Of a stretch of DNA of 64,000 bases, positions 11,119 to 64,000 are shown one piece after another. The DNA is from Macrostomum lignano (lineage: Eukaryota): the NCBI GenBank assembly GCA_002269645.1, contig NIVC01002263.1, positions 1 through 64,000 of the forward strand, written 5' to 3'. How positions within the stretch are numbered: position 1 is the stretch's first letter; each line of letters starts with the position of its first letter. The position numbers and the translations under genes were made by a program. The notes under the pieces are model-generated. The model was given only the letters and a program-made list of their open reading frames with translations, did no database searches and was not told where the DNA came from.

Positions 11119-11387
11119 ATGACAACCTCGCAAAAGCACAGAAACTTTGTAGCCGAGCCGATGGGGGAAAAGCCGGTAACAGAACTGCCCGGCATTGGCC
11201 CCGTGCTGGGCGAGCGGCTTGCCTCAAGGGCTGCGACAGGGCCTACGTAATCCTTGGCCAGTTTCTCGTTGTCAAGAAGGACAAAGAAATGTTTACCGAT
11301 TGGTTGAATGACCAATGCAATGCCAATACTAAGCAGGCTGGCGACTGCTACAACGGTCTGGTTGAATGGTGTAACGCCTTCTTGTAG
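11119..11387 (+). pseudogene. BANF1: Barrier-to-autointegration factor, intronless, with a 1-nt frameshift (pseudogene or assembly error)
   Basis: ATG 11119 gives [36 protein letters not shown]; the -1 frame from 11226 gives [27 protein letters not shown]...LVEWCNAFL*. Adding one base at TCAAG (11224-11228) yields an 89-aa BAF. As written, the frame stops at 11248. Confidence 0.9.
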
Positions 11388-12484: not shown

Positions 12485-13189
<705 letters not shown>

Positions 13190-41000: not shown

Positions 41001-44000
41001 AGGTCACTGGGATAAAATCCCACTGAAAAATCTTTGGGATAAAATCCCACTGAAAAATCACAGTGATAAAATCCCACTGAAAATTCACAGGGAGAAAACC
41101 ACACTGAAAATTCGGATAAAATCCTGCTTAAAAGTCATGGGGATAAAATCACTGACAAGTCTGGGATGAAATCACACTGAAAAGTCACAGGGATTTGAAC
41201 TATTTGACGCAATGTCGAGCCCTCGAGTTTTTCTCCCCTAGTCTAACCCTACCCCACATAACTCTTGCCGATTGCCTCTAATCTGAGCTAAGCTATCCTC
41301 TCGTTACATGCGCGCTGATGTGGGAGGAGGCTGCGACGGCGCCATCCATCTGAACATTTGGGTCCGCAGTTAATACTCTCGTATTGTGCGCGGGCTATGC
41401 TGCATGGCATTAGTAGTGGGTCGTGTATCTCCCCCCCCCCAGCGTGCGTTCTGAATTATTGCTGCCTGCTGCCCCCCTATCTATCCGGTTCGTGAGGCGC
41501 CTGTCTGCCTGCTGTCTACCTGGGAGGGATGGATGGGGGTCGCCATTGCCTCTCGCCATCTGGTTTGCCTGCTCTCCTGCTGCTGCTGCTGCTGCTAAAT
41601 GCTTGATATGGATTTTTATGCGCTAAATTACTGTGCCAGCTGCATTGATTGATGGCTCATTATTGATCTGCGATGGAATGCCGGCTGTTGGGTACTGTTC
41701 TGCTCATGCGGCTCCAGCTGACAGCATCAGTGCAGTAGATGGGTAATCAGCTGACAGCATCAGTACAGTAGATGAGTCACCAGCTGACAGCATCAGTGCA
41801 GTAGATGAGTCACCAGCTGACAGCATCAGTGCAGTAGATGGGTAATCAGCTGACAGCATCAGTACAGTAGATGAGTCACCAGCTGACAGCATCAGTGCAG
41901 TAGATGAGTCACCAGCTGACAGCATCAGTGCAGTAGATGGGTAATCAGCTGACAGCATCAGTACAGTAGATGAGTCACCAGCTGACAGCATCAGTGCAGT
42001 AGATGGGTAATCAGCTGACAGCATCAGTGCAGTAGATGAGTCACCAGCTGACAGCATCAGTGCAGTAGATGGGTAATCAGCTGACAGCATCAGTGCAGTA
42101 GATGGGTCACCAGCTGACAGCATCAGTGCAGTAGATGGGTCACCAGCTGACAGCATCAGTGCAGTAGATGGGTCACCAGCTGACAGCATCAGTGCAGTAG
42201 ATGAGTCACCAGCTGACAGTATCATTACAGTAGATGAGTCACCAGCTGACAGCATCAGTGCAGTAGATGAGTCACCAGCTGACAGCATCAGTGCAGTAGA
42301 TGGGTCACCAGCTGACAGCATCAGTGCAGTAGATGGGTAATCAGCTGACAGCATCAGTGCAGTAGATGGGTCACCAGCTGACAGCATCAGTGCAGTAGAT
42401 GGGTAATCAGCTGACAGCATCAGTGCAGTAGATGGGTCACCAGCTGACAGCATCAGTGCAGTAGATGGGTAATCAGCTGACAGCATCAGTACAGTAGATG
42501 AGTCACCAGCTGACAGCATCAGTGCAGTAGATGGGTAATCAGCTGACAGCATCAGTGCAGTAGATGAGTCACCAGCTGACAGCATCAGTGCAGTAGATGA
42601 GTCACCAGCTGACAGCATCAGTGCAGTAGATGGGTAATCAGCTGACAGCATCAGTGCAGTAGATGGGTCACCAGCTGACAGCATCAGTGCAGTAGATGGG
42701 TCACCAGCTGACAGCATCAGTGCAGTAGATGAGTCACCAGCTGACAGCATCAGTACAGTAGATGAGTCACCAGCTGACAGCATCAGTGCAGTAGATGAGT
42801 CACCAGCTGACAGCATCAGTGCAGTAGATGGGTCACCAGCTGACAGCATCAGTGCAGTAGATGGGTAATCAGCTGACAGCATCAGTGCAGTAGATGGGTC
42901 ACCAGCTGACAGCATCAGTGCAGTAGATGGGTAATCAGCTGACAGCATCAGTGCAGTAGATGGGTCACCAGCTGACAGCATCAGTGCAGTAGATGGGTAA
43001 TCAGCTGACAGCATCAGTACAGTAGATGAGTCACCAGCTGACAGCATCAGTGCAGTAGATGGGTAATCAGCTGACAGCATCAGTGCAGTAGATGAGTAAT
43101 CAGCTGACAGCATCAGTACAGTAGATGGCTAATCAGCTGACAGCATCAGTGCAGTAGATGGGTAATCAGCTAAAAGCATCAGTGCAATAGATTGGTAATC
43201 AGCTGACAGCATCAGTGCAGTAGATGAGTCACCAGCTGACAGCATCAGTACAGTAGATGAGTCACCAGCTGACAGTATCATTGCAGTAGATGAGTCTCCA
43301 GCTGACAGCATCAGTACAGTAGATGAGTCACCAGCTGACAGCATCAGTGCAGTAGATGAGTCACCAGCTGACAGCATCAGTACAGTAGATGAGTCACCAG
43401 CTGACAGCATCAGTGCAGTAGATGAGTCACCAGCTGACAGCATCAGTGCAGTAGATGAGTCACCAGCTGACAGTATCATTACAGTAGATGAGTCACCAGC
43501 TGACAGCATCAGTACAGTAGATGAGTCACCAGCTGACAGTATCATTGCAGTAGATGAGTCACCAGCTGACAGCATCAGTGCAGTAGATGAGTCACCAGCT
43601 GACAGCATCAGTACAGTAGATGAGTCACCAGCTGACAGCATCAGTACAGTAGATGAGTCACCAGCTGACAGCATCAGTACAGTAGATGAGTCACCAGCTG
43701 ACAGCATCAGTACAGTAGATGAGTCACCAGCTGACAGCATCAGTACAGTAGATGAGTCACCAGCTGACAGTATCAGTGCAGTAGATGAGTCACCAGCTGA
43801 CAGCATCAGTGCAGTAGATGGGTCACCAGCTGACAGCATCAGTGCAGTAGATGGGTAATCAGCTGACAGCATCAGTGCAGTAGATGGGTAATCAGCTGAC
43901 AGCATCAGTGCAGTAGATGAGTCACCAGCTGACAGCATCAGTACAGTAGATGAGTCACCAGCTGACAGCATCAGTACAGTAGATGAGTCACCAGCTGACA

Positions 44001-47000
44001 GCATCAGTACAGTTGATGAGTCACCAGCTGACAGTATCAGTGCAGTAGATGAGTCACCAGCTGACAGCATCAGTACAGTAGATGAGTCACCAGCTGACAG
44101 CATCAGTACAGTAGATGAGTCACCAGCTGACAGCATCAGTACAGTTGATGAGTCACCAGCTGACAGTATCAGTGCAGTAGATGAGTCACCAGCTGACAGC
44201 ATCAGTACAGTAGATGAGTCACCAGCTGACAGCATCAGTACAGTAGATGAGTCACCAGCTGACAGCATCAGTACAGTAGATGAGTCACCAGCTGACAGCA
44301 TCAGTACAGTAGATGAGTCACCAGCTGACAGCATCAGTACAGTTGATGAGTCACCAGCTGACAGCATCAGTACAGTTGATGAGTCACCAACTGACAGCAT
44401 CAGTACAGTTGATGAGTCACCAACTGACAGCAGCAGCAGATCTCAACCGAGTACCCAACCGCCTGCCCCCCAGAGCTGCATCGTTATCCAGGAGATCTAC
44501 ATCGACGGTCTCGTTGCTAAGGACGGCCGGCTTCGGCCCGGCGACCAGATTCTGGAGGTTAACGGCGAGGAGCTGACGCAGGCCACCCACTGCCAGGCCA
44601 AGCGGGCGCTGTCCCAGCTGAATCCCATCTGCCGACTAGCCGTGTACCGGGAGCGCACCGAGGATCCTAATAGGCCTGAGGAGCAGCTCAAAGTGACGCT
44701 TAACAAGCGCGTGGGGAAAACGCTGGGGATTAAGCTGGTTGGCAAAAAGTGAGATTCCGTTCTCTTATCATTTTTTATCTCCGTACGAGCGTAGTAACAG
44801 CCTAGCAACCAATTTGATTTGCCTTGAAACATATATTTAAGTTGCCTAGCAACCGATCCAAGTTGATAAAATATAGTTCAACGTTGCCTAGCAACCGATT
44901 CAAGTTGCCTAGAAATAGATATCTACTTTGCCTAGCTACCGATTCGAGTTGCCTAGAAATAGATATCTACTTTGCCTAGCTACCGATTCGAGTTGCCTAG
45001 AAATAGATATCTACTTTGCCTAGCAACCGATTCGAGTTGCCTAGAAATAGATATCTACGTTGCCTAGCAACCGATTCGAGTTGCCTAGAAATAGATATCT
45101 ACGCTGCCTAGCAACCTATTCGAGTTGCCTAGAAGTATATATCTACGCTGCCTAGCAACCGATTCGAGTTGCCTAGAAGTAGATATCTACTTTGTCTAGC
45201 AACCGATTCAAGTTGCCTAGAAATAGATATCTACGTTGCCTAGCTACCGATTCGAGTTGCCTAGAAGTAGATATCTACTTTGCCTAGCAACCGATTCAAG
45301 TTGCCTAGAAATAGATATCTACGTTGCCTAGCTACCGATTCGAGTTGCCTAGAAATAGATATCTACGTTGCCTAGCAACCGATTCGAGTTGCCTAGAAAT
45401 AGATATCTACTTTGCCTAGCAACCGATTCGAGTTGCCTAGAAATAGATATCTACTTTGCCTAGCAACCGATTCGAGTTGCCTAGAAATAGATATCTACTT
45501 TGCCTAGCTACCGATTCGAGTTGCCTAGAAATAGATATCTACTTTGCCTAGCTACCGATTCGAGTTGCCTAGAAATAGATATCTACTTTGCCTAGCTACC
45601 GATTCGAGTTGCCTAGAAATAGATATCTACTTTGCCTAGCAACCGATTCAAGTTGCCTAGAAATAGATATCTACGCTGCCTAGCAACCGATTCAAGTTGA
45701 TAAAAAATAGTTCTACGTTGCCTAGCAACCGATTCAAGTTGCCTAGAAATAGATATCTACGTTGCCTAGCAACCGATTCGAGTTGCCTAGAAATAGATAT
45801 CTACGCTGCCTAGCAACCGATTCAAGTTGATAAAAAATAGTTCTACGTTGCCTAGCAACCGATTCAAGTTGCCTAGAAGTATATATCTACTTTGTCTAGC
45901 AACCGATTCAAGTTGCCTAGAAATAGATATCTACGTTGCCTAGCTACCGATTCGAGTTGCCTAGAAGTAGATATCTACTTTGCCTAGCAACCGATTCAAG
46001 TTGCCTAGAAATAGATATCTACGTTGCCTAGCTACCGATTCGAGTTGCCTAGAAATAGATATCTACGTTGCCTAGCAACCGATTCGAGTTGCCTAGAAAT
46101 AGATATCTACTTTGCCTAGCAACCGATTCGAGTTGCCTAGAAATAGATATCTACTTTGCCTAGCAACCGATTCGAGTTGCCTAGAAATAGATATCTACTT
46201 TGCCTAGCTACCGATTCGAGTTGCCTAGAAATAGATATCTACTTTGCCTAGCTACCGATTCGAGTTGCCTAGAAATAGATATCTACTTTGCCTAGCAACC
46301 GATTCAAGTTGCCTAGAAATAGATATCTACGCTGCCTAGCAACCGATTCAAGTTGATAAAAAATAGTTCTACGTTGCCTAGCAACCGATTCAAGTTGCCT
46401 AGAAATAGATATCTACGTTGCCTAGCAACCGATTCGAGTTGCCTAGAAATAGATATCTACGCTGCCTAGCAACCTATTCGAGTTGCCTAGAAGTATATAT
46501 CTACGCTGCCTAGCAACCGATTCGAGTTGCCTAGAAGTAGATATCTACTTTGTCTAGCAACCGATTCAAGTTGCCTAGAAATAGATATCTACGTTGCCTA
46601 GCTACCGATTCGAGTTGCCTAGAAGTAGATATCTACTTTGCCTAGCAACCGATTCAAGTTGCCTAGAAATAGATATCTACGTTGCCTAGCTACCGATTCG
46701 AGTTGCCTAGAAATAGATATCTACGTTGCCTAGCAACCGATTCGAGTTGCCTAGAAATAGATATCTACTTTGCCTAGCAACCGATTCGAGTTGCCTAGAA
46801 ATAGATATCTACTTTGCCTAGCAACCGATTCGAGTTGCCTAGAAATAGATATCTACTTTGCCTAGCTACCGATTCGAGTTGCCTAGAAATAGATATCTAC
46901 TTTGCCTAGCTACCGATTCGAGTTGCCTAGAAATAGATATCTACTTTGCCTAGCAACCGATTCAAGTTGCCTAGAAATAGATATCTACGCTGCCTAGCAA

Positions 47001-50000: not shown

Positions 50001-52200
50001 CATTTAGTGAAATAACTCACATTGACTATTTTTGAAGTTAAATAAACTTTGTCTGTTAGATCATGATAAATTAATACAAAAGTAACAACACTTAGCAACA
50101 TAGAACATGTGGTCACCTCGCCACCCGCCCACAGGACCTGTCCCGGCCTATTCATCCTGGGCCTGGTGGTTGGCGGCTTAGCCGAAATAGACGGCCGGCT
50201 CAGACGGGACGATCGAATCCTAGAAATTAATGATCAGGACATCCGCAACGGCACCCAGGCGGAGGCTGCCGCAATTATTCAGGTGTGCCAGGCTCACATA
50301 TCGACTGAGAGTATCGATAGCCAGAGTGACAGTCACAGACTCATTGAGAGCATTGGCACCTAAAGAGTGACAGACTCATTGAGGGGATTGGCACCCGACG
50401 AGTGACAGACTCATTGAGAGATTTGGAACCCGAAGAGTGACAGACTCATTGAGGGGATTGGCACCCGACGAGTGACAGACTCATTGAGAGATTTGGAACC
50501 CAAAGAGTGACAGACTCATAGAGAGTATTGGAACCCAAAGAGTGACAGACTCATTGAGAGATTTGGAACCCAAAGAGTGACAGACTCATAGAGAGTATTG
50601 GAACCCAAAGAGTGACAGACTCATTGAGAGATTTGGAACCCAAAGAGTGACAGACTCATAGAGAGTATTGGAAACCAAAGAGTGACAGACTCATTGAGAG
50701 ATTTGGAACCCAAAGAGTGACAGACTCATTGAGAGGTCTGGCACCCGAAGAGTGACAGACTCAAAGAAAGGACTGGCACCCAAAGAGTGACAGACTCAAT
50801 GAGAGATTTAGAACCCAAAGAGTGACAGACTCATTGAGAGGTCTGGCACCCGAAGAGTGACAGATTCATTGAGAGGTCTGGCACCCAAAGAGTGACAGAC
50901 TCTTGAAGATTTTTGTTACCCTTAAAGACAGACCGAACACGTTGGGACTCTTTAAGTCACTAATTTCTAAGAAATGAAATTCTCCCAATCCCCCCCCCCA
51001 GGCTGCCGAGGACAAGGTGACCTTCCTGGTGTCGCGGCGGACGCGGCCGCAGACCCCGGACCTCATCCAGGCGGCCTCAAGCGACAGCCTCTCGGATCTG
51101 TGCCGCGGCCAGCTGCCCCCGCCTGCTCTGGCCTCTGGCTATGCCGGCTTCGCCTCCTGCGCTCCCCCGCTGGGCCGCCGGTCGCTGCCCTACCTGACTG
51201 ACTCCGGCGCCGGCCCCATGTATCCCATCGACGATGAGTCCGACTATCAGGGCCGGGTTGTGGTGATTGAGAAGCTGGCCGGCGAGTCCCTGGGCATGTC
51301 GGTGGCTGGCGGCATCGGCTCCCAGCGCGGCGACATTCCCGTCTACGTTACCAACCTGCAGCCTGACGGCCTGGCCGCCAGGTCCAGGCAGGTGAGAAAA
51401 GGCGACGTACTGCTGGCTGTGAACGACATCCCGCTGCTGGGCCTCAGCCACGAGGAGGCCGTGCGACTGCTCAAAGCTCAAGAGGGACCCGTTGCTGTGC
51501 GCCTGCTGCCAGGTGAGTCTGGTGATCTCCCTGTTCTGTCAGGCAGCCTCCATGTTGTGTCAGGTGGCCTCATTGATCTGTAGGAAATCCCAGTACCCCT
51601 GAAGAAAGCCTAGTACCCCTTGAAGAAATCCCAGTACCCCTGAAGAAAGCCCAGTACCCCTTGAAGAAATCCAGTACCCCTGAAGAAACTCCAGTACCCT
51701 TGAAGAAATCCCAGTACCCCTGAAGAAACCCCAGTACCCTTGAAGAAATCCCAGTACCCCCTGAAGAAACCCAGTACCCCCTGAAGAAACCCTGTACCCC
51801 CTGAAGAAAGCCGCTGCTCACCCCTCCAGGCTCCGAGTCCAGCTCAGGCGGCGGCAACTTCATGCCCAGCTGGGTTTACTGGCTCTCCCTGCCGCCTGTC
51901 TGCTACCTGGAGCGCAACGTGGACCTGGCCCGGGACCCCTGCACCGGCTCTCTCGGCTTCTCCATCGTTGGCGGCGCCGACAGCCTCGCCGGGCCGCAGC
52001 CCATCATCGTCAAGAGCGTCGTCTACGGCGGCCCAGCGCACGAGGACGGCCGGCTGCGCTGCGGCGACATGATCACCAGGGTGAACGGCGACTGCCGACT
52101 GGCCGGCTTCACCCACGCCCAGGCTGTGGCTCTGCTGAAATCTCTGCGCTGCGACACCGTGCTGCTGACTGTGGTCTCCTGGCCTGGCACCATTGTGTGA
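18602..52200 (+). CDS. LNX2: LNX1/2-type E3 ubiquitin ligase (Zn-RING, two TRAF-type Zn fingers, 4 PDZ); whole gene, 10 exons
   Basis: Exons 18602-18877, 21271-21675, 22121-22281, 35905-35997, 37155-37318, 38385-38497, 44474-44748, 50135-50282, 51002-51512, 51830-52200. All introns GT-AG with compatible phases (0,0,2,2,1,0,2,0,1). Exons 2-10 total 2241 nt (746 aa + stop). The C-terminus VVSWPGTIV* is typical of LNX1/2. The symbol means LNX1/2 co-ortholog. Confidence 0.92.
19130..19942. repeat. 37-nt minisatellite TGGAATAGAATGGATTGCTAATCTATCCATTATGTCA, ~22 copies
   Basis: Period measured 19201 to 19238; LNX intron 1. Confidence 0.95.
20640..21186. repeat. 23-nt minisatellite CCCCTGTTCCCCTCCCTTCAGTG, ~24 copies
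   Basis: Period 21061 to 21084; ends ~85 nt before exon 2. Confidence 0.95.
21271..21675 (+). CDS. LNX2: LNX exon 2 (poly-Pro, N-terminal Zn motif, start of RING)
   Basis: TTCCTCAG| ... LDLCSSCGRFHEAGGAHLYDYDQDIDQDLMCK |GTTAGC; matches the LNX2-type LCxxCGxxH...HLYxY...DLxC. Confidence 0.9.
21742..21990. repeat. 28-nt minisatellite GAGTGAGAATTCAGGTCTAAACTTCAGG, ~9 copies
   Basis: Period 21841 to 21869; fills most of intron 2. Confidence 0.92.
22121..22281 (+). CDS. LNX2: LNX exon 3 (RING, C3HC3D type)
   Basis: LCQQPLVDPLDTKCGHTFCTPCLKSHLARQALCPIDKSIINFLECSQASSLVK; AATTTCAG| and |GTGAGT. Confidence 0.93.
22345..22460 (-). mobile_element. tRNA-SINE fragment, cut off by the 44-nt array
   Basis: B box GGTTCGATTC (22450-22441); body motif shared with the 10690-10967 SINE. 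Confidence 0.4.
22461..23040. repeat. 44-nt pyrimidine-rich minisatellite, ~13 copies
   Basis: Period 22561 to 22605. Confidence 0.92.
25215..25820. repeat. 19-21-nt minisatellite AGAGTGACTCTCAATCCATCC
   Basis: Two blocks separated by a short unique insert near 25500-25550. Confidence 0.92.
26064..26096. repeat. (CTG)11 microsatellite
   Basis: Direct read; intronic. Confidence 0.95.
26575..26683 (+). other. Candidate alternative LNX exon inside intron 3
   Basis: Acceptor-like CCCTCCCTAG| (26574), ATG 26583 reading MPAAAASNATVAASAAAAKPSSYQHSGLLLSPS, donor GG|GTGAGA in phase 2, compatible with exon 4. Confidence 0.45.
26717..27767. repeat. 33-nt minisatellite GGTGTGCTGAGCCCGGCTTGATAGCGGCTGTAA, ~32 highly homogeneous copies
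   Basis: Explains the 314-aa LIAAVRCAEPG ORF; starts ~33 nt after the candidate alternative donor. Confidence 0.97.
28500..30326. repeat. 22-nt minisatellite TGTCTGTCTGCATCTGTCTCAG, ~80 copies, grown from a (TCTG)n seed
   Basis: Pure TCTG run at 28505-28570 grades into the 22-mer; stop-free in all three + frames, giving three false 580-640-aa ORFs. Confidence 0.97.
31760..31905 (-). mobile_element. tRNA-derived SINE head (MIR/CORE-like arrangement)
   Basis: A box TAGCCTAGTGG (31901-31891), B box GGTTCGATTC (31857-31848), followed by GTGTCCTTGAGCAAGACATCTAAC, which resembles the post-tRNA segment of CORE-type SINEs. The anticodon stem does not pair. Confidence 0.65.
31931..34703 (+). mobile_element. 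Helitron-like non-autonomous element with (TCTG)n head; 3' end tentative
   Basis: A|TCTATATCTATAAAAATCAAAAC start, (TCTG)n 31954-32017, internal repeated CCATAG..TTGCTCCAC...AAATTTGACACA modules, possible end CCGCGGG...CAGCTTG|T at 34684-34704. Confidence 0.4.
33220..34430. repeat. GA-rich low-complexity polypurine tract
   Basis: Almost exclusively G/A on + strand; source of the S/L-rich minus ORFs. Confidence 0.95.
35310..35850. repeat. 56-nt minisatellite, ~9-10 copies
   Basis: Period 35366 to 35422; internal GAGTCTCA/TGAGACTC inverted pair; ends ~55 nt before exon 4. Confidence 0.95.
35905..35997 (+). CDS. LNX2: LNX exon 4 (Zn finger 1)
   Basis: (K)[30 protein letters not shown](R); GCGCAG| and |GTGAGT; phase 2/2. 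Confidence 0.9.
36105..36850. repeat. 21-nt minisatellite CTGAAGCTGATAATCTCTATC, ~35 copies
   Basis: Direct read; intron 4. Confidence 0.95.
37155..37318 (+). CDS. LNX2: LNX exon 5 (TRAF-type Zn finger 2, Ala-rich linker)
   Basis: CRGAVTRCSKSGQGCTFQGPRTALQNHLWECPFRSE...; C-x6-C-x11-H-x3-C; TTCACAG| and |GTGAGC. Confidence 0.88.
37345..38330. repeat. 21-nt minisatellite GAGTGAGTGAATGCTATCAAT, ~47 copies
   Basis: Fills intron 5 from ~26 nt after the donor to ~55 nt before the acceptor. Confidence 0.95.
38385..38497 (+). CDS. LNX2: LNX exon 6 (PDZ1 start)
   Basis: GEWSSKPPIVSGEVTVIEIPRGCYDLGISFVGGCDTPL; TTCGCAG| and |GTAAGG. Confidence 0.9.
39470..41200. repeat. 26-31-nt minisatellite GTGACAGGGATAGAATCCCACTGAAA, ~60 copies
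   Basis: Period 39841 to 39867; central block of longer variants; degenerate edges. Confidence 0.95.
41716..44430. repeat. 33-nt minisatellite CAGCTGACAGCATCAGTGCAGTAGATGAGTCAC, ~82 copies
   Basis: Explains the MLSAGDSSTAL ORFs; ends ~44 nt before exon 7. Confidence 0.97.
44474..44748 (+). CDS. LNX2: LNX exon 7 (PDZ1 end, PDZ2 start)
   Basis: [31 protein letters not shown]...RLAVYRE...KTLGIKLVGK; CCCCCAG| and |GTGAGA. Missed by the ORF track. Confidence 0.92.
44800..47332. repeat. 44-nt minisatellite (dimer of TTGCCTAG-led halves) with higher-order structure, ~58 copies
   Basis: Period 45361 to 45405; diagnostic variants recur at 656-658-nt spacing. Confidence 0.97.
48597..49345. repeat. 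31-nt minisatellite GGGCTGAAGTATGTCGCCTAACACCAGTGCT, ~24 copies
   Basis: Period 48841 to 48872. Confidence 0.96.
50135..50282 (+). CDS. LNX2: LNX exon 8 (PDZ2)
   Basis: TCPGLFILGLVVGGLAEIDGRLRRDDRILEINDQDIRNGTQAEAAAIIQ; CCCACAG| and |GTGTGC. Confidence 0.9.
50330..50905. repeat. 35-nt minisatellite AGAGTGACAGACTCATTGAGAGATTTGGAACCCAA, ~16 copies
   Basis: Period 50581 to 50616; fills intron 8. Confidence 0.95.
51002..51512 (+). CDS. LNX2: LNX exon 9 (linker and PDZ3)
   Basis: AAEDKVTFLVSR...ESLGMSVAGGIGSQRGDIPVYVTNLQPDGLAARSRQVRKGDVLLAVND...; poly-C AG| and |GTGAGT. Confidence 0.92.
51585..51812. repeat. ~21-nt minisatellite AGTACCCCTGAAGAAATCCC, ~11 copies
   Basis: Fills intron 9; ends ~18 nt before exon 10. 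Confidence 0.93.
51830..52200 (+). CDS. LNX2: LNX exon 10 (PDZ4 and C-terminal PDZ-binding motif)
   Basis: NFMPSWVYWLSLP...SLGFSIVGG...IIVKSVVYGGPAHEDGRLRCGDMITRVNG...VVSWPGTIV*; CCCTCCAG|. Confidence 0.93.
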
Positions 52201-52244
52201 CCGCCTCCGGCTTTGTGCCATTGCATATCCGAAATGTTGCGTTG

Positions 52245-54805
52245 TAGCTGAAATGGGTGCTGCCATCCATTGTGCTGAAATGGGCCGCTGCCATCCATTG
52301 TGTGCTGAAATGGGCCGCTGCCATCCATTGTGCTGAACTGTGCCGCTGCCATCCATTGTGTGCTGAAATGGGCCGCTGCCATCCATTGTGCTGAACTGTG
52401 CCGCTGCCATCCATTGTGTGCTGAACTGTGCCGCTGCCATCCATTGTGTGCTGAAATGGGCCGCTGCCATCCATTGTGCTGAACTGTGCCGCTGCCATCC
52501 ATTGTGTGCTGAAATGGGCCGCTGCCATCCATTGTGTGCTGAAATAGGCCGCTGCCATCCATTGTGTGCTGAAATGGGCCGCTGCCATCCATTGTGCTGA
52601 ACTGTGCCGCTGCCATCCATTGTGTGCTGAAATAGGCCGCTGCCATCCATTGTGCTGAAATGGGCCGCTGCCATCCATTGTGCTGAAATGGGCCGCTGCC
52701 ATCCATTGTGCTGAAATTGGCCGCTGCCATCCATTGTGTGTTGAACTGTGCCGCTGCCATCCATTGTGTGCTGAACTGTGCCGCTGCCATCCATTGTGTT
52801 GAAATAGGCCGCTGCCATCCATTGTGCTGAACTGTGCCGCTGCCATCCATTGTGCTGAAATGTACCGCTGCCATCCATTGTGTTGAAATAGGCCGCTGCC
52901 ATCCATTGTGCTGAACTGTGCCGCTGCCATCCATTGTGCTGAACTGTGCCGCTGCCATCCATTGTGCTGAACTGTACCGCTGCCATCCATTGTGCTGAAC
53001 TGTGCCGCTGCCATCCATTGTGTGCTGAAATGGGCCGCTGCCATCCATTGTGTGCTGAAATGGGCCGCTGCCATCCATTGTGTGCTGAAATGGGCCGCTG
53101 CCATCCATTGTGCTGAACTGTGCCGCTGCCATCCATTGTGTGCTGAAATGGGCCGCTGCCATCCATTGTGCTGAACTGTGCCGCTGCCATCCATTGTGTG
53201 CTGAAATGGGCCGCTGCCATCCATTGTGTGCTGAAATGGGCCGCTGCCATCCATTGTGCTGAACTGTGCCGCTGCCATCCATTGTGTGCTGAAATGGGCC
53301 GCTGCCATCCATTGTGTGCTGAAATAGGCCGCTGCCATCCATTGTGTGCTGAAATGGGCCGCTGCCATCCATTGTGCTGAACTGTGCCGCTGCCATCCAT
53401 TGTGTGCTGAAATAGGCCGCTGCCATCCATTGTGCTGAAATGGGCCGCTGCCATCCATTGTGCTGAAATGGGCCGCTGCCATCCATTGTGCTGAAATGGG
53501 CCGCTGCCATCCATTGTGCTGAAATTGGCCGCTGCCATCCATTGTGTGCTGAACTGTGCCGCTGCCATCCATTGTGTGCTGAACTGTGCCGCTGCCATCC
53601 ATTGTGTTGAAATAGGCCGCTGCCATCCATTGTGCTGAACTGTGCCGCTGCCATCCATTGTGCTGAAATGTACCGCTGCCATCCATTGTGTTGAAATAGG
53701 CCGCTGCCATCCATTGTGCTGAACTGTGCCGCTGCCATCCATTGTGCTGAACTGTGCCGCTGCCATCCATTGTGCTGAACTGTACCGCTGCCATCCATTG
53801 TGCTGAACTGTGCCGCTGCCATCCATTGTGCTGAAATGTACCGCTGCCATCCATTGTGTTGAAATAGGCCGCTGCCATCCATTGTGCTGAACTGTGCCGC
53901 TGCCATCCATTGTGTGCTGAAATGGGCCGCTGCCATCCATTGTGTGCTGAACTGTGCCGCTGCCATCCATTGTGTGCTGAAATGGGCCGCTGCCATCCAT
54001 TGTGTGCTGAAATAGGCCGCTGCCATCCATTGTGCTGAACTGTGCCGCTGCCATCCATTGTGTGCTGAAATGGGCCGCTGCCATCCATTGTGTTGAAATA
54101 GGCCGCTGCCATCCATTGTGCTGAACTGTGCCGCTGCCATCCATTGTGTGCTGAAATGGGCCGCTGCCATCCATTGTGTGCTGAAATGGGCCGCTGCCAT
54201 CCATTGTGTGCTGAACTGTGCCGCTGCCATCCATTGTGTGCTGAACTGTGCCGCTGCCATCCATTGTGCTGAACTGTGCCGCTGCCATCCATTGTGCTGA
54301 AATGTACCGCTGCCATCCATTGTGTTGAAATAGGCCGCTGCCATCCATTGTGCTGAACTGTGCCGCTGCCATCCATTGTGTGCTGAAATGGGCCGCTGCC
54401 ATCCATTGTGTGCTGAACTGTGCCGCTGCCATCCATTGTGTGCTGAAATGGGCCGCTGCCATCCATTGTGTGCTGAAATAGGCCGCTGCCATCCATTGTG
54501 TGCTGAAATTGGCCGCTGCCATCCATTGTGTGCTGAAATAGGCCGCTGCCATCCATTGTGTGCTGAAATAGGCCGCTGCCATCCATTGTGTGCTGAAATG
54601 GGCCGCTGCCATCCATTGTGTGCTGAAATGGGCCGCTGCCATCCATTGTGTGCTGAAATAGGCCGCTGCCATCCATTGTGTGCTAAAATTGGCCGCTGCA
54701 ATCGATTGTGCTGAACTGTGCCGCTGCCATCCATTGTGCTGAACTGTGCCGCTGCCATCCATTGTGTGCTGAAATGGGCCGCTGCCATCCATTGTGCTGA
54801 ACTGG
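52245..54805. repeat. 28/30-nt minisatellite GCCGCTGCCATCCATTG(TG)TGCTGAAATGG, ~88 copies
   Basis: Begins ~45 nt after the LNX stop codon; source of the 855-992-aa minus ORFs. Confidence 0.97.
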
Positions 54806-56089
54806 ACCCACGTGCTAATCACTCTACTGCTAGCAATATTTTGCGTTTGTATTGATTATTCAAAATCATGCAGAGAATTGATGAACAAATTGATTTTCAG
54901 TCATTTTTTAGTCCAACTAAGACGAAAATGTTGTTTAATAATCTCAAAGTCACATTTTTGTTTTGCTTTGTGGCTTGAGAGGGTTGGAGTCACCTTTTGC
55001 AGTATTTTTTATTGCTTTTGCACTGTCTGCAGTGCTGGGAGTGCCGCACCCGCCGCCTGTCATTTCACATTCTCCGTCTCACCCGGTCTCGCGCGCACTT
55101 GGATTTTGAATTATTGACCCGAAAATATTCAACCGCCAACTTTTATTAATCTCAATGTATGATTCTGCTGGCTGACTGCCATGTTTCCCTTGAAAGAAGA
55201 TGTTCCTCCCAAAAAGCGGCTTCTCATGTCGAATGCAGCAGCTTCTGCTCATTTTTCGTACAGTTTTGATTCTCAAATTATTTATTTCTAATCTAAATAA
55301 ATTTATCTGGTCATTGCGCTCGCTCTACCCTACTAACAACTGCTTTGTCAGTAGTGCAGTGCGGACACGATTAGTGCACTTTTTATCGAGTGTTTGTTTA
55401 TCCGCCGTGTATTTTTGCCTTTTCTCGGCTTTTGCTTGATTTTTTCCCACCCCCCCCCCGCGCTCCACTCCTTCTAGGAGAGCAGCCCGCTGCAGCTGAA
55501 AATTTTCGGCGCTTTTTATGAGTCCGTTTGCTGTACAGATTTGCCTGCGTCTCTGCTGCTAAGCCCGCCTGTTACTTGCGGACCACGTGCTCCTGTATTT
55601 GTATATTTCTGCTTCTATTATTATTTATTCATTTATTTTTGCAGTTGTTCAAATTTTAGTGCGTGCTCTTTCTCTCTTTGTGTCCTTTATTAAACAATAG
55701 AATCTGCTAAATACACCAGGCAAACACATTTCAGCTACTAACAGTAACATATTATACACTCTGCTTGGGTCTCATTTATCGGAATTCATTATTCATCGCA
55801 ACGCGCGCCTGTTTTAGAATTCAACAAGATTTGCTTCATTTGATTATAAACTGCAGACAGACATTTGGTAGATGGAGCTAGAGAGGTTCAGGTAAACTGA
55901 AGTTCACATTGTTTACCTTCAAAGCTGCTGATTTGTGCGACTTTGATTACTCCTGGCGGGTCCAGTCTTGATTTTATAGGTCCGCATCAAGTGTCCGGCT
56001 CTTTCAAGAATGAAAATATTCAAGATGGTCCACCTAAGGCAGGAGGTAAAGCTACCGAGGCTAATGAACCAACGTAAGGTACACGTAAA

Positions 56090-56500: not shown

Positions 56501-57293
56501 GAAGCAGAAGCCGCCAACAGGAAGCAGCCGGCTTGTTATTAATATTTCAACACTAATTACTGGCAAATAGGTTATATTTATAACTGATAGTATAATTGTT
56601 ATAAATAAATATAATATGTATTCTTACAAAACAAACAACGGGCAGGATTACAGAGACACGAGAAAAAATAAATCGCTAATGATGATGGCGGGGCAGCTCT
56701 GAGACCGGGTTAAGCCAGGCGGGGGAAACGGAGCACGCATTGAGAAGACACAGCGCTACTGAAATGTGGCGAATAAAGATAGAAACAGTCTCAAACAACA
56801 TTCGGCGGCGAAAATAAGCGAGTCACCTGCATTGGGGATTTAATAACAGCATTACTAAATTAAAAATAACAGAAAGCATCCACTGAAAGCTTGCGCCAGA
56901 AACTTTACATCAATAGGGTTTCCTGGGAACATAATAACAAAATGACAAAAGTTGATGAAGTCTTATTTATGAATTTCTGAAACTGAAATTTCGACTGCCG
57001 ATATGTTGCGTAAATAACTTCGCGGAGCATAATTTCTCAAGTATATATAATAGGGGTGGATTCGGCGCTTGGTCCAATAGCGACAGTTCGTTTAATTAAG
57101 TTTGAAACAGCGAAAAAATAATGATCTGCTGGACAAGAGAAGCGGCAACAAAGACTACACTGGGTATTATTGACACAAAGACCACCAGATGAACAACCAG
57201 AGTGCAGACAGCAGACAACAGCAAATACGCGGCATCCATAAACACAAATACGGGCATTTCTAGTTCGGAATATCAGAGAGTGAATTGAAAATC

Positions 57294-57467
57294 TCAAACT
57301 GTCGATTCAAGCACTGAGACGGCGTCCCTGACGGCTCTGTACAGCAGTCTGCGGAGCGGCAGCCTATTGTGCTGGCGCATCTCCCGGCCCGTGGCCAGAC
57401 ACTGGCGGCAGCTCTCCTGGCTGACAAAATCCACTGACAGGCTGATGCCGCTGTGCAGGTTGCGCAC
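57294..57467 (-). CDS. KDM3/JMJD1-family gene, last coding exon
   Basis: TTGCCCAG| VRNLHSGISLSVDFVSQESCRQCLATGREMRQHNRLPLRRLLYRAVRDAVSVLESTV*, matching the KDM3 end VHNLYSCIKVAEDFVSPE...IIYHAVKDAV. 174 nt, phase 0. Confidence 0.88.
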   Translation of the reverse strand: MRNLHSGISLSVDFVSQESCRQCLATGREMRQHNRLPLRRLLYRAVRDAVSVLESTV

Positions 57468-57489
57468 CTGGGCAAATGTTGCAGAATGC

Positions 57490-58320
57490 AGATGCAGATT
57501 TCAGAACGTGGAGGATTCCTGATTGCAGTGTGGTGGATTCCCGATTGCAGAACGTGGGGGGGGATTCCCGATTACAGAATGTGGGGGTAGGGAATTCCCG
57601 ATTGCAGAATGTGGAGGGGAGGATTCCCGATTGCAGAGTGTGGGGGGAATCCTGATTGCAGAATGTGGGGGGAATCCCGATTGCAGAGTGTGGGGGGAAT
57701 CCTGATTTCAGAATGTGGGGGGATCCTGATTGCAGAATGTGGGGGGGATCCTGATTGCAGAATGTGGGGGATTCCCGATTGCAGAATGTGGGGGATTCCC
57801 GATTGCAGAATGTGGGAGGATTCCCGATTGCAGAATGTGGGAGGATTCCTGATTGCAGAATGTGGGGGGGGATCCTGATTGCAGAATGTGGGGGGGGATC
57901 CTGATTGCAGAATGTGGGGGATTCCTGATTGCAGAATGTGGGAGGATTCCCGATTGCAGAATGTGGGAGGATTCCCGATTGCAGAATGTGGAAGGATTCC
58001 CGATTGCAGAATGTGGGAGGATTCCCGATTGCAGAATGTGGGAGGATTCCCGATTGCAGAATGTGGGAGGATTCCCGATTGCAGAATGTGGGGGATTCCC
58101 GATTGCAGAATGTGGAAGGATTCCCGATTGCAGAATGTGGGAGGATTCCCGATTGCAGAATGTGGGAGGATTCCCGATTGCAGAATGTGGGAGGATTCCC
58201 GATTGCAGAATGTGGGAGGATTCCCGATTGCAGAATGTGGGAGGATTCCTGATTGCAGAATGTGGGAGGATTCCCGATTTTAAGATGTGAGGGAATTTCC
58301 GATTGCAGAATGTGAGGGGG
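57490..58320. repeat. 23-25-nt minisatellite GGATTCCCGATTGCAGAATGTGGGA, ~34 copies
   Basis: Period 58143 to 58168; fills the KDM3-like intron 57468-58334 almost edge to edge. Confidence 0.95.
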
Positions 58321-58334
58321 GATTTCGGCCCTAC

Positions 58335-59946
58335 CTGATAAGGCGCCCCGGCGGGCACGAAGACGGTGTCGCCCTGGAACTGCACAATCACGGCGGGGCG
58401 CAGGCCGCACTTGAGTCTGAGCCGGTCCAGCTCCGCAGGTCCCAGGTAGGTGCCCGTCTGCTCCGCCAGCGGGTTGCCGCCGCCATTTTCGGCGCCGGCA
58501 GCCAGGAAGCGGCGCAGTTTGGCGGCGTCGGCAGGCCGGAAGACGTGCCAGAGGGCGCCGGGCAGACGGGAGTCCACGGCGATGGAGCGCAGGACGCCGG
58601 GGTCAACGCTGGCCCGCTCCAGTGCGGCGAAGGCGGCGGCCTTCTGCTGCTCCAGCGCGTCCTCCGGAGCGGCCACGTGGGCCAGCAGCACGGCCAGGTC
58701 GGCTGGCTGGCAGTGCAGCGCGAATGTGCCGGCAGTCTCGGTGCGCGACATGCCGTAGGCGCAGGTGAGCCGGGGAGGCGCGCAGCCGGCCGCCAGGTTG
58801 CAGCGGCCGCCGGCTCCGGTGTACTCGGCAAACGGCACAGCCTTGGCGAGCTCGGACAGCGGCAGGCTGAACGGCTGGCCGGCGGGCGGGCGGAGCCGCA
58901 GCGAAAGCGGGTCGCCTGTGGCGGGGTTCTTCAGCCGGCGCTTCATGCTGTCGAAGCCGTCCCAGAAGTGGCGGGTGGGGCTGGCGGGCAGCTCGGTGCC
59001 GGCGTCGCAGTTCAGCACGCTGCATCGGCAGCCGGTCAGGCCGCGGCTCAGACTGCGCGGATGCCACCAGGCGTCGGCAGCAGCGGCGGCAGCGGCTGGC
59101 AGGCAGTTGGCCACCACAACTGGGAGGCCGCGGCGCCAGTGCCGCTGGAAGGCCAAGCAGCCGGGGCCGTCGGCCTGGCGCGGCGGCTCAGAGAAGCGCA
59201 GGATGAGGCTCCGGTTGTACGCGGCCTCCGCGTCTGGGTCTGCCGGGCTGTCGGCGGCTACTGGCGGCGGCGGCGGCGGCGGCGACTCCGGCGGGGAGAG
59301 CGGCGGCACGCGGAGGCTGGCAACGGCGGAGGCGAGGCGGGCGAAGGCGTCCCCAGGGACGTTGGTGGCCAGCAGCAGGCGGTCGGGCTCGTGCGCCTGC
59401 CGACCGACCGTGCAGTCGCCTGCGGCTGCCACGCCGCCGCCTGGACGAAGCCGCGTCGCTGGCCGGTCGGAGGAGGAGGCGGCAGCGGCTGCTGCGGCGG
59501 CGGCTGGGTCGGAGAGGCGGCAGTCGGGGCAGAGGGCGTAGCCGCACTTGCCGCAGCAGAAGTAGGCGCCGAACAGCGTTGAGTCGCACTGGTCGCAGGC
59601 TGTACCGCAGTTGCCCCGTCCGACGCCGCCGACGTCTCGACGGCGCCAAAGCGACGCGGCGTTCGTGCCATCGCCCCCGGCTCCGCCGTAGCGGGCGCGC
59701 AGCTGGCGCTCCTGGCTGGCGAGTTCCTGGAAGGCTTCGCCGACAAAACTCAGCAGCCGTCGGGCCTCCGAGGCGACGACGCCAGGGGCGGCGGCTGCGG
59801 CGGCTCCGTTTGGCGGCTTGCGCAGCCAGGCGGCCAGGTCCTCGGGCTCGGCCTCGGTTGACTCGCAGAAGCCGCAGGCGGTCAAGCCGCCTTTCTTGTT
59901 GTAGCGCAGCCTGCGGTGCAAGATGGCGGAGAGTTTGGATTCTGGG
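58335..59946 (-). CDS. KDM3/JMJD1-family protein, large exon with C6 zinc finger and JmjC domain (predicted inactive); 5' part of gene not found
   Basis: CDQCDSTLFGAYFCCGKCGYALCPDC (KDM3 Zn finger); FQRHWRRGLPVVV; HFWDGF; PFAEYT...G..NLA; PGALWHVF; IVQFQGDTVFVPAGAPYQ|GTAGGG. Acceptor uncertain (candidates 59941, 59946, 59976). Confidence 0.9.
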
Positions 59947-59964
59947 CTGCCAGATTGGATGTCA

Positions 59965-60178
59965 GGCAGCGCCAAGCTGGGTACTAGTGGCGCCAAGCTG
60001 GGTACTAGTGGCGCCAAGCTGGGTACTAGTGGCGCCAAGCTGGGTACTAGTGGCGCCAAGCTGGGTACTAGTGGCGCCAAGCTGGGTACTAGTGGCGCCA
60101 AGCTGGGTACTAGTGGCGCCAAGCTGGGTACTAGTGGCGCCAAGCTGGGTACTAGTGGCGCCAAGCTGGGTACTAGTA
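59965..60178. repeat. 21-nt minisatellite AGTGGCGCCAAGCTGGGTACT, ~10 copies
   Basis: Explains the LAPLVPS repeat at the start of the 818-aa ORF; abuts the KDM3-like exon. Confidence 0.96.
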
Positions 60179-61369
60179 GTTTATTGATAAAAAATGAATT
60201 ATATTTTTGTTTTCAAGTGATTCTACGCAGGCAAACTACTTAAAGTAGGTGATAATAAATCCCTAATATAAAAGATTGCATAAAATTTACGTTTCTAAAT
60301 ATTTTCTAGCTTGTTTCAGCCTCGTGACTCAGACGTGCGCTGTCTCAGCCTATTTTTAGTGCATTCGCCTGCCTATATGCAGTAGATAAGTTCGGAGGCC
60401 TCCTAATTAAATTATGCCAGTTTAGGAGGCCAGATTAATAATAGAATAGATGGATCGATAGGAGTACGGATTGTAATAAATTAAGCCTAATGCTCCGTTC
60501 GTGTTAACTCGACTTGTACCGCGCGCGCTCCCTGCCTTGCCAGTTATGCACTTTTATGCACTTTTACGGAGGCCGCTGGGACAGAACGGTTCTCTCTCTC
60601 CTGAATGCTCTCCGCCACCCCCCTCCCACCCCGGGGAGGACAGACACGGAGTTGCGTGCTTAGGGAATTCGATTGTAGCAAGCAAGTATATGTATGGGAT
60701 TATAAGGAATTGGCTGGGGACACCGCGCTTTCGTGTGAGTCAGTTCTCGAGCGGAATTTCACGAAGCGGAGGCGTTTCACATTCCCCAGTGACATCCGCC
60801 TCAACATTCCCCAGTGACATCCGACTCCACATTCCCCCACTTTCACATTCACCAGTGACATCTGACTGCACATTCCCCTCCCAATTTCACATTCCCAAAT
60901 GACAGTTGTTATAAGAGGCCTATCTAGCCTAAATGCTGATGACAAGCACCATAATGTCAGTTTCTAATTGCGTCACTGCACTCCAAGCCGCAGCCTGAGA
61001 AACGGTACGATAGCGCTGGCTGCAAAATTAATGAATTCGGCTACAGAATAGATGGGGCGCTGTTTCCAATTGCAGACTAACAAACACACAACTAGGGTTT
61101 TGATGAGTTTGCTACAAAAAATTGTTGCAAACAGATAGAAAGGCGGAAGCTTTTCTACTTGACTGGCTGAGTGGCTTGCTACTGTTGCAGTCACGATTCT
61201 TTAATTTTAGACTGCGTGCGAAAACAGCCTCCCTTCATGCATGCTCCACTGCTTTCATCTTTTCCCAACCTAACGCAGGCTATCCTTTCCCTCCCCTGCC
61301 CCTATTGCTCTCCCTTCTATTCCCTCCCTTTCTCAAATCCCACCTTCTGTGTGCCACAATTAGTGCAGC

Positions 61370-61950
61370 CTTCTCCCACTCTCCTTGTGTTACCCTCTCC
61401 CCTTCCACTCTCTCCCTCTAGCTCTAGAGTCTCATCTCTCCCTTCTCCCACTCTCCTTGTGTTACCCTCTCCTCTTCCACTCTCTCCCTCTAGCTCTAGA
61501 GTCTCATCTCTCCCTTCTCCCACTCTCCTTGTGTTACCCTCTCCTCTTCCACTCTCTCCCTCTAGCTCTAGAGTCTCATCTCTCCCTTCTCCCACTCTCC
61601 TTGTGTTACCCTCTCCTCTTCCACTCTCTCCCTCTAGCTCTAGAGTCTCATCTCTCCCTTCTCCCACTCTCCTTGTGTTACCCTCTCCCCTTCCACTCTC
61701 TCCCTCTAGCTCTAGAGTCTCATCTCTCCCTTCTCCCACTCTCCTTGTGTTACCCTCTCCTCTTCCACTCTCTCCCTCTAGCTCTAGAGTCTCATCTCTC
61801 CCTTCTCCCACTCTCCTTGTGTTACCCTCTCCTCTTCCACTCTCTCCCTCTAGCTCTAGAGTCTCATCTCTCCCTTCTCCCACTCTCCTTGTGTTATCCT
61901 CTCCTCTTCCACTCTCTCCCTCTAGCTCTAGAGTCTCATCTCTCCCTCTC
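61370..61950. repeat. 72-nt pyrimidine-rich minisatellite, ~8 copies
   Basis: 24-aa periodicity in track ORFs. Confidence 0.95.
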
Positions 61951-61974
61951 TCCCACTCTCCCACTCTCCCTCTC

Positions 61975-62470
61975 ACCCTCTCCTTCTCTCCCTCACCCTC
62001 TCTCCCTCACCCTCTGTCCCTCACCCTCTCTCCCTCACCCTCTCTCCCTCACCTTCTATCCCTCACCTTCTCTCCCTCACCTTCTCTCCCTCACCTTCTC
62101 TCCCTCACCTTCTCTCCCTCACCTTCTCTCCCTCACCTTCTCTCCCTCACCTTCTCTCCCTCACCTTCTCTCCCTCACCTTCTCTCCCTCACCTTCTCTC
62201 CCTCACCTTCTCTCCCTCACCTTCTCTCCCTCACCTTCTCTCCCTCACCTTCTCTCCCTCACCTTCTCTCCCTCACCTTCTCTCCCTCACCTTCTCTCCC
62301 TCACCTTCTCTCCCTCACCTTCTCTCCCTCACCTTCTCTCCCTCACCTTCTCTCCCTCACCTTCTCTCCCTCACCTTCTCTCCCTCACCTTCTCTCCCTC
62401 ACCTTCTCTCCCTCACCTTCTCTCCCTCACCTTCTCTCCCTCACCTTCTCTCCCTCACCTTCTCTCCCAC
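61975..62470. repeat. 14-nt minisatellite CCTTCTCTCCCTCA, ~35 copies
   Basis: Direct read. Confidence 0.96.
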
Positions 62471-63284
62471 CCTCTCCCTTCATTTCTCTACTAGTATCTG
62501 CAGTTTTCGCCCCTCTCCCTCCTGTCTCCTTACCTGCCTCTCCCCAGTCTTTCTCTTTGAATTCCCAGTTTCTCCCTTCTCTCCCCTTCGCCATTGTTTC
62601 TTTCCAGCTTTCTCAAACCCCCTTCCCTTGTAAGCAACAACAGCAACAGCCCGCAAAGTTCACGTGGCGTTCCCGGCCTCCCCCGCCCTTCGCCATTATC
62701 TTTACCTAGCTCACTATTTAACTACTCAAGAATTTTCTGCTCAGTCTTTCTCAGTTGAACACGAGGCTCCGATTGCAGCCGGTGCGCTCTGTATTATTTT
62801 ACTGACTATAGTTAGCCAAGCCAGCTAGGCTTGTCAGACCGGCAACAGGCCGGGCGGAAATGCAGACCCGCGGCACCCGTCCACTTCCCCTCCCCGTCCG
62901 CAAGCCCGCCTGTTGTTTGTTGCACTGCTAGTTGCTAGCTAATTCTGGGCTTTTTCCCTGCTTTGCTTTGGGCATAGCCTGACATTCTGAAAATACAGTT
63001 TCTTTCATTTCTTTAAACACCATCCTACAGCAGGCTTGTCTACGGTGCAATATTCAGCTCAATTCATCAGGGTATGTGTCCGTGCAAGAGCAGAATTAGG
63101 GAAATGTGTGACATTTAATCTCTCACAATATGATACCGACTCATATCACTTTGACACTATAATACAACTATACCTCTGACTCCTCTACACTCCTCCACTC
63201 TGACAACTTTTGTCCTCACCCCGAAACCTATGATTACACACCCATACAAGTACAAACAAATCTTGTATGGATTGTACGGACACC

Positions 63285-63965
63285 CAGACACCTCAAATCT
63301 CACACCCAGACAACTCAAATCTCACACCCAGACACCTCAAATCTCACACCTAGACACCTCAAATCTCACACCTAGACACCTCAAATCTCACACTCAGACA
63401 CCTCAAATCTCACACCCAGACACCTCAAATCTCACACCTAGACACCTCAAATCTCACACCCAGACACCTCAAATCTCACACCCAGACACCTCAAATCTCA
63501 CACCCAGACACCTCAAATCTCACACTCAGACACCTCAAATCTCACACTCAGACACCTCAAATCTCACACCCACCAGACACCTCAAATCTCACACCTAGAC
63601 ACCTCAAATCTCACACTCTGACACCTCAAATCTCACACTCAGACACCTCAAATCTCACACCCACCAGACACCTCAAGTCTCACACTCAGACACCTAAAAT
63701 CTCACACTCAGCCACCTCAAATCTCACACTCAGACACCTCAAATCTCACACCCAGACACCTCAAATCTCGCACCCAGACACGTCAAATTTCACACCCAGA
63801 CACCTCAAATCTCACACTCAGACACCTCAAATCTCACACCCAGACACCTCAAGTCTCACACCCAGACACCTAAAATCTCACACTCAGACACCTCAAATCT
63901 CACACTCAGACACCTCAAATCTCACACCCAGACACCTCAAATCTCGCACCCAGACACCTCAAATC
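63285..63965. repeat. 22-nt minisatellite CAGACACCTCAAATCTCACACC, ~30 copies
   Basis: Direct read. Confidence 0.95.
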
Positions 63966-64000
63966 CATCCCTGCCAGCCGCCCCCAATCCAGTCCCAGTC

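Follow-up and report, generated by a model that had tools for sequence, protein, structure and literature searches.

Mlig018660 of Macrostomum lignano, a multi-copy flatworm KDM3 relative with replaced JmjC cofactor residues and a putative non-catalytic role

The stretch of DNA analyzed here (the window) comprises 64,000 nucleotides, positions 1 to 64,000 of contig NIVC01002263.1 from the flatworm Macrostomum lignano (assembly GCA_002269645.1), and its minus strand carries, from 59910 to 57294, two exons and one intron that are the 3′-terminal coding exons of the gene Mlig018660. By similarity of its JmjC domain, this gene is a member of the KDM3/JMJD1 (JHDM2) subfamily of histone H3 lysine 9 (H3K9) demethylases, and the residues of its cofactor site have been replaced. 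The explanation that best fits the data, at a probability of about 0.7, is that Mlig018660 is a transcribed, near-identical multi-copy descendant of a flatworm KDM3 gene whose product kept its fold, lost its catalytic site and was retained for a non-catalytic role.

A sequence search of the PDB with the spliced product of the two exons (582 residues, counting from the first complete codon in exon A) gave matches to KDM3B and JMJD1C only, in their JmjC domains, with E-values of 4e-36 to 3e-33 over ~330 residues, and the product also matched the Pfam JmjC family with an E-value of 3e-7, over the curated cut-off. An AlphaFold model made with 57 sequences had predicted local distance difference test (pLDDT) scores mostly of 80–95 over the JmjC region. 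When this model was used in a Foldseek search, KDM3B/JMJD1C were matched with target template-modelling (TM) scores of 0.81–0.84, that of KDM3B being 0.82, root-mean-square deviations of ~2.9 Å and E-values of 1e-27 to 1e-21, with the next subfamilies at 1e-8. The model thus indicates that the fold is retained in the window protein while the catalytic residues are lost. An earlier reading made from the sequence only had proposed a KDM3/JMJD1 homolog in an invertebrate, and these sequence and structure matches, in a flatworm host, bear this out. The closest relatives outside Macrostomum are molluscan KDM3 proteins with 36–38% identity. The product is unusual in composition, with an Ala + Gly + Pro + Arg content of 44% compared to at most 34% in all 147 relatives. 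Exon A has a G+C content of 70% and a G+C content at third codon positions (GC3) of 0.86, and two other coding stretches in the window, at 8160–8708 and 51017–51583, have GC3 values of 0.68 and 0.78, respectively. GC-biased gene conversion among the copies of the gene is a possible cause of the high G+C content.

At five cofactor positions, the window gene reads F-H-Q-Y-S where the canonical sequence is T-H-D-H-K. The canonical residues are read by 85 of 110 relatives, which were drawn from an exhaustive representative homology search and combined with the window gene in a 111-sequence alignment of JmjC regions. The Fe(II) facial triad of active KDM3 demethylases, H-x-D/E...H, is replaced by H-x-Q...Y, the conserved Thr three residues ahead of the first His is Phe, and Ser stands in place of the conserved Lys that follows the distal His by ten residues. 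The sequence-only reading had claimed an H-C-Q motif, Tyr for the distal His, Ser for the Lys and Phe for the Thr, and all four were found at exactly the codons it had cited (Table 1). It had also described a shortened LKLKDWPP segment and a lost RPDLGPK loop, and both can be seen in the alignment to the JmjC domains of KDM3B and JMJD1C, where the RPDLGPK region corresponds to an 8-residue gap in the window gene. Most of the replacements (Asp to Gln, Lys to Ser and Thr to Phe) need two base changes each, suggesting that they did not arise as single mutations of recent date. In 87 of the 111 aligned sequences the Lys of SCIKVAEDF is kept, JMJD1C-type sequences having Gln and several Hairless proteins Ser at this position; a literature check for a role of this Lys in 2-oxoglutarate binding found no confirmation, so that its importance is seen here as conservation only. 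The claim that the cofactor residues are gone holds for two of the three iron ligands and for the replacement of both positions that the sequence-only reading had assigned to 2-oxoglutarate, but the assignment of the Lys as a 2-oxoglutarate binder was not confirmed.

The KDM3-type zinc finger, which had been described as preserved, is altered as well. Compared with the C2HC4 pattern C-x2-C-x7-H-x2-C-x2-C-x4-C-x2-C, the window gene has every one of the six Cys at the exact spacing. At the position of the His ligand, however, which is His in 115 of 118 relatives, it has Tyr (TAC, 59564–59562), followed two residues later by an additional Cys. The C2HC4 finger has been reported to be necessary for the activity of KDM3A (PMC3623819). 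The conserved PC...KCRECR...CRFxxFRKLRY...GF region of the family is also present and is split by an intron, with its second half opening exon A and its first half lying beyond the window. An alignment of the window with a second M. lignano contig (L001) places this preceding exon (FVQDSPC..KCRECR..CRFIGFRK) ~45–275 bp past window position 64000. It was located in L001 at 5248–5476, where it ends in AGAAA/GTGAGA and the junction reads FRK/LRY; its sequence is identical in a third contig (L003), and exactly the same FRK/LRY exon join is shown by the UniProt model A0A1I8IPA5 (P0188).

Within the window, the reading frame is open across the junction between the two exons, with a splice donor CAG/GTAGGG (58335/58334) and a splice acceptor CCCAG/GTG (57468/57467), and the intron between them is almost wholly a 25-bp tandem repeat of ~33 copies (57497–58320). 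The intact frame over two exons noted by the sequence-only reading was thus upheld, but the exon start it had placed at 59946 was not, as the true acceptor, ...caccgcag/G in phase 2, is at 59910 and the open frame further upstream consists of intron and a perfect 21-bp × 10 repeat.

The closest proteins in the databases are PAA84810 (BOX15_Mlig018660g3, P0003) and PAA57837 (g2, P0187) of M. lignano, both of 261 aa, and the matching UniProt models from this species are A0A1I8IPA5, A0A1I8F8Z2 and A0A1I8F4Y9. L001 and L003 belong to separate contigs of GCA_002269645.1 and align collinearly with the window for >15 kb, and the M. lignano genome is known to contain large duplicated blocks of at least 95% identity (PMC5730564), indicating that these loci represent a single duplicated gene, of which at least three near-identical copies are present across the window and the public assemblies. 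The exons of L001 and L003 differ from those of the window at 1 and 3 bases, respectively, exon B being identical in L001 and having one synonymous difference in L003, and the cofactor codons are unchanged in all of them. All of the variant motifs are also carried by the protein models P0002 and P0188, and the Tyr and Ser motifs by P0001, which is frameshifted near the first motif. The older models P0002 and P0188 also translate through tandem repeats. Public protein models of this gene are wrong in one way or another, being cut to 261 aa, frameshifted or extended into repeats.

Placement of the gene was examined with a neighbor-joining tree and 200 bootstraps, in which the window gene sits on a long branch that moves among other long branches. 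It sits with flatworm KDM3 in ~40% of the bootstraps, and with every other group less often. Among >300 sequences, F-C-x-[ST]-x-E-A, a motif that follows FRKLxY, was found only in the KDM3 proteins of Fasciola, Clonorchis, Opisthorchis and Echinococcus and in the window gene. These sequence data support an origin of the gene within the KDM3 (JMJD1/JHDM2) lineage of flatworm H3K9 demethylases. The degenerate sequences adjoining JMJD1C in the tree are the Hairless (HR) orthologues of turtle, coelacanth, caecilian, shark and lamprey. The core of this clade (turtle, coelacanth, caecilian and one further relative) was recovered in 180/200 bootstraps, and the window gene lies outside of it, having the Hairless clade as its nearest group in only 13/200. 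The flatworm-limited motif, together with the failure to group with Hairless, indicates that the loss was independent of that in vertebrate Hairless, in agreement with the independent origin of the degeneracy that had been proposed from the sequence. A grouping with two other degenerate proteins, P0122 and P0140, was rejected, since it was found in 21/200 bootstraps with 27% identity.

Other members of the family have also lost cofactor residues. Trematode KDM3 is canonical. The cestode KDM3 proteins of Echinococcus granulosus/multilocularis (P0093, 'jumonji domain containing 1A') and Hymenolepis diminuta (P0254) read GT[MV]NLRVD and NCINVSSDF, with the first His changed to Arg and the Lys to Asn. 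These replacements differ from those of Macrostomum, indicating separate and independent losses within the flatworms. The distal Tyr of the window gene matches the Hairless proteins of turtle, coelacanth and caecilian, and its Ser matches those of turtle and coelacanth, so that these replacements are convergent. In the KDM3 of the salmon louse Lepeophtheirus salmonis, a copepod (P0116), the distal His is Lys. Two further eukaryotic sequences, P0122 (Logan SRR14039592, L004) and P0140 (JGI 3300046571, L005), read S-H-E-F-L and S-R-D-Y-I and are sisters in 200/200 bootstraps. Degenerate KDM3 relatives are thus already known and recurrent (Hairless, the cestodes, the copepod and P0122/P0140), and the window gene is less unusual than had been implied.

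Given these replacements, the question is whether the gene is maintained or decaying. Were it a pseudogene, a KDM3 duplicate in decay, it would owe its open frame only to its 70% G+C content and to the young age of the copies, and other frames of exon A do hold long open reading frames of 154–431 aa. The true frame, however, has no stops compared to 4–9 in the other five frames, only 2 of 20,000 composition-preserving shuffles were stop-free, and the G+C content by codon position (0.73/0.60/0.86) has a strong third-position periodicity. At 65% divergence from every relative, the gene has nevertheless acquired only in-frame indels, all gaps relative to KDM3B being in frame, and has kept its fold-defining residues. 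It keeps 61 of the 106 columns that are ≥90% conserved in canonical KDM3, while Hairless proteins keep 51–61 and cestode KDM3 keeps 78. Between copies, the exons differ at 1/1750 and 3/1750 positions (L001 and L003) compared to 26 and 29 in 2670 bp of unique flanking and intronic DNA, so that they are 6–17-fold less diverged than the adjacent unique non-coding DNA; the intron between exons A and B is 5–6% diverged with many indels. The Mlig_3_7 annotation was derived solely from RNA-seq and transcript assemblies (PMC5730564), and two of its models, P0003 and P0187, cross the junction of exons A and B. Decay is, therefore, improbable in our view, and the preference of the sequence-only reading for selection, which had been based on the open frame, is favored on stronger evidence.

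Several observations weigh against a maintained gene with a non-catalytic product, and some of these would be expected of a pseudogene. A start codon was not found, as exon A has no Met ahead of MKRRL, and in L001 and L003 neither a G+C-rich island nor homology in the upstream 5 kb pointed to a further 5′ exon, so that further 5′ exons must lie >5 kb upstream. At 59529 the window reads CCCC, but L001 (~9418) and L003, both from Mlig_3_7, read CCC, a 1-bp deletion that breaks the frame. This deletion is absent from the window and also from the ML2-based model of the g2 copy, recognized by its S198R variant, which is in frame, and it is probably a homopolymer assembly error in Mlig_3_7. It would also account for the 261-aa NCBI proteins starting at MKRRL, which is the first Met after the break. 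The four exon differences among the three copies (two non-synonymous and two synonymous) are too few for a formal ratio of non-synonymous to synonymous rates (dN/dS), synonymous sites are less diverged between copies than introns are, and gene conversion could possibly mimic constraint between the copies. The evidence of transcription comes from annotation models; no Logan-derived (read-assembled) protein of this gene and no orthologue in another species were found among the homology-search results. Finally, calls of inactivity from motifs have been disputed in the case of Hairless (PMC8237996).

With a His-Gln-Tyr site, the Phe and Ser replacements, a Tyr in the zinc finger and two shortened surface segments, Fe(II)- and 2-oxoglutarate-dependent demethylation would have been lost, and what is kept would be a folded module of zinc finger and JmjC domain, the latter with its double-stranded beta-helix and C-terminal helices, serving a non-catalytic job such as the binding of a partner or of chromatin. 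Judged from these residues, 2-oxoglutarate-dependent demethylation by the window protein is very unlikely. A role as a chromatin reader or scaffold is speculative and is proposed by analogy with Hairless, JARID2 and JMJD1C.

A second alternative is that the protein is still an enzyme, with an unconventional metal site (His, Tyr and perhaps Gln or the adjoining Cys) that supports demethylation or another oxidation, or with a different substrate. The first His is retained. PHF2 is generally known to bind Fe(II) with Tyr at the position of the distal His. Fe(II) structures of PHF2 exist, and one of these, 3pu8, was among the Foldseek matches to the model of the window protein. Moreover, human HR, which according to a review departs from KDM3A only in having Cys in place of the first His of the metal motif, has been reported to demethylate mono- and dimethylated H3K9 (H3K9me1/2) (PMC8237996). 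In the window gene, however, the carboxylate ligand is Gln, Thr and Lys have become Phe and Ser, and the zinc finger needed for KDM3A activity has lost its His (PMC3623819). A single change of the first His to Ala or Tyr is sufficient to abolish the activity of KDM3A/KDM3B (PMC3623819; PMC13149330), and JMJD1C, in which only the Lys is changed (to Gln), was inactive in one study (PMC3623819). Retained enzymatic activity is thus quite improbable. An origin of the unusual residues in errors of sequencing or assembly, or in a mis-joined gene model, is hardly credible. Frameshifts abound in the older models P0001 and P0002, and the Mlig_3_7 copies have the homopolymer indel, but the replacements are multi-base substitutions rather than indels, and the same codons occur in the window, in the two further genomic copies and in several protein models that derive from two other assemblies, including three in UniProt.

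How much this gene matters depends in part on the presence of an intact KDM3 elsewhere in M. lignano. No intact M. lignano KDM3 was recognized by composition or by the flatworm motif among 147 representatives (the top 150 of the exhaustive search), which is weak evidence as most entries have no organism names. A trematode-seeded search had no Macrostomum entry among the 120 matches listed of 236, and KDM3, JMJD1 and Mlig018660 were not found in the full text or supplements of the M. lignano literature. Word-indexed searches with the window protein gave 2–3 matches and missed known identical proteins, probably as a result of the Ala-rich composition, and absences from these searches were not used. 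Two G+C-rich canonical KDM3 candidates, P0145 (an ENA metagenome contig, L002) and P0307 (Logan SRR18067410), could not be assigned to M. lignano. L002 (ENA ERZ25068762, ctg150118_3x_l) carries at 7499–14861 a three-exon, G+C-rich animal KDM3 with an intact H-x-D...H and Ser at the Lys position (SCISATVEF). We consider it unlikely that Mlig018660 is the sole KDM3-family gene of M. lignano, leaving the organism with no catalytically competent KDM3.

Taken alone, the finding is at the level of annotation, and it becomes more interesting only if M. lignano has no intact KDM3. If Mlig018660 were the sole gene, flatworms, counting the cestodes, would repeatedly have turned an H3K9me1/2 demethylase into a non-enzyme, here in a free-living and regeneration-competent species, and the convergence of Tyr and Ser with non-mammalian Hairless would suggest a common non-catalytic function of KDM3 scaffolds. 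JARID2, Hairless and arguably JMJD1C are cases in which the demethylase fold was reused in non-catalytic chromatin regulation, and the flatworm gene may be a natural replicate of this. It could also help to define the role of the KDM3 zinc finger and JmjC domain apart from catalysis. RNA interference is routine in M. lignano. Transgenesis has also been established in this species (PMC5730564).

The features of the gene are collected in Table 1. The 494 bp 3′ of the stop differ by 0.2–0.4% between copies.

Table 1 Features of the Mlig018660 locus in the window and motifs of its product compared with canonical KDM3
Feature	Position	Strand	Description
Upstream intron, 3′ part	59911..64000	-	~4.1 kb; tandem repeats: 21-mer 59969-60177, 72-mer 61369-61961, 14-mer 61971-62468, 22-mer 63280-63965
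Exon A	58335..59910	-	1576 nt, begins in codon phase 2; FRK/LRY junction region, zinc finger, Ala/Pro-rich linker and most of JmjC; last residues PAGAPYQ
KDM3-type zinc finger	59520..59597	-	CDQCDSTLFGAYFCCGKCGYALCPDC; six Cys canonically spaced
First cofactor motif	58707..58724	-	F-A-L-H-C-Q vs T-N-L-H-L-D; Phe396 TTC 58724-58722, His399 58715-58713, Gln401 58709-58707; H-C-Q = CAC TGC CAG, 58715-58707
Tyr524, distal iron-binding His position	58338..58340	-	TAT, in PAGAPYQ; from alignment to KDM3B/JMJD1C and family alignment
Intron between exons A and B	57468..58334	-	867 bp; GT 58334-58333, AG 57469-57468
Exon B, last coding exon	57294..57467	-	VRNLHSGISLSVDFVSQESC...SVLESTV; TGA stop 57296-57294; carries Ser534
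Ser534, conserved Lys position	57441..57443	-	AGC, in SGISL; from alignment to KDM3B/JMJD1C and family alignment
Probable 3′ untranslated region	57075..57293	-	ATTAAA signal 57096-57091; inferred, 3′ limit approximate
Canonical KDM3 motif GTTNLHLD			GTFALHCQ in the window gene
Canonical KDM3 motif PAGAPHQV			PAGAPYQV in the window gene
Canonical KDM3 motif SCIKVAEDF			SGISLSVDF in the window gene
Canonical KDM3 motif LKLKDWPP			LRLRPP in the window gene

Tandem arrays of 14- to 72-bp units crowd the introns and intergenic DNA of the window and were also found at 60779–60904, 26835–27779, 28462–30381, 41704–44400 and 51844–54822. These repeats are open in several frames, resulting in spurious open reading frames of up to 992 aa. 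Two unrelated neighbors are encoded on the plus strand. The first, at 8160–8708, is an intron-less open reading frame of 182 aa with a histone-fold CBFD_NFYB_HMF domain (E-value 5e-20), which we take to be similar to NC2-beta/Dr1, and the second, at 51017–51583, is an exon encoding a PDZ domain (E-value 8e-13).

Among known systems, KDM3A and KDM3B (JMJD1A/B, JHDM2A/B, with their molluscan and trematode orthologues) are the best sequence and structure matches to the window gene, with which they have in common the order of parts, CRECR...CRF...FRKLRY followed by a zinc finger with identical Cys spacing and a C-terminal JmjC domain. The window gene differs from them in having H-Q-Y in place of H-D-H as iron ligands, in the Thr to Phe, Lys to Ser and zinc-finger His to Tyr changes, in its shortened LKLKDWPP and deleted RPDLGPK segments and in its extreme Ala/Gly/Pro/Arg content. 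Hairless, which is regarded as a non-catalytic co-regulator (PMC3623819), likewise belongs to the KDM3 family, with a JmjC domain that is degenerate and a similar share of conserved positions, and the turtle and coelacanth proteins have the same distal Tyr and the same Ser at the Lys position, the caecilian protein having Tyr but Gly. However, HR forms its own vertebrate clade next to JMJD1C and is a separate lineage, and the turtle, coelacanth and caecilian proteins have lost the first His, which the window gene keeps. Among the Hairless-type proteins, those of hawksbill turtle (P0095), coelacanth (P0125), caecilian (P0135) and lamprey (P0034) all have the distal Tyr, with Ala at the Lys position in lamprey, and the degeneracy of Hairless appears from these sequences to vary widely among vertebrates.

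The cestode KDM3 proteins come from the same phylum, have degenerate cofactor positions and, in Echinococcus, carry the F-C-x-[ST]-x-E-A motif, but they keep the Asp and the distal His along with 78/106 conserved positions compared to 61/106 in the window gene. JMJD1C (KDM3C) is similar to the window gene in that the conserved Lys is replaced, in this case by Gln, but it retains H-x-E...H metal ligands and the zinc-finger His; H3K9 demethylase activity was not detected for JMJD1C and a scaffold role has been proposed (PMC3623819). JARID2, the textbook JmjC protein that has lost its cofactor residues and acts as a scaffold, resembles the window gene in the loss of these residues, but both JARID2 and PHF2 belong to other JmjC subfamilies and have other accessory domains.

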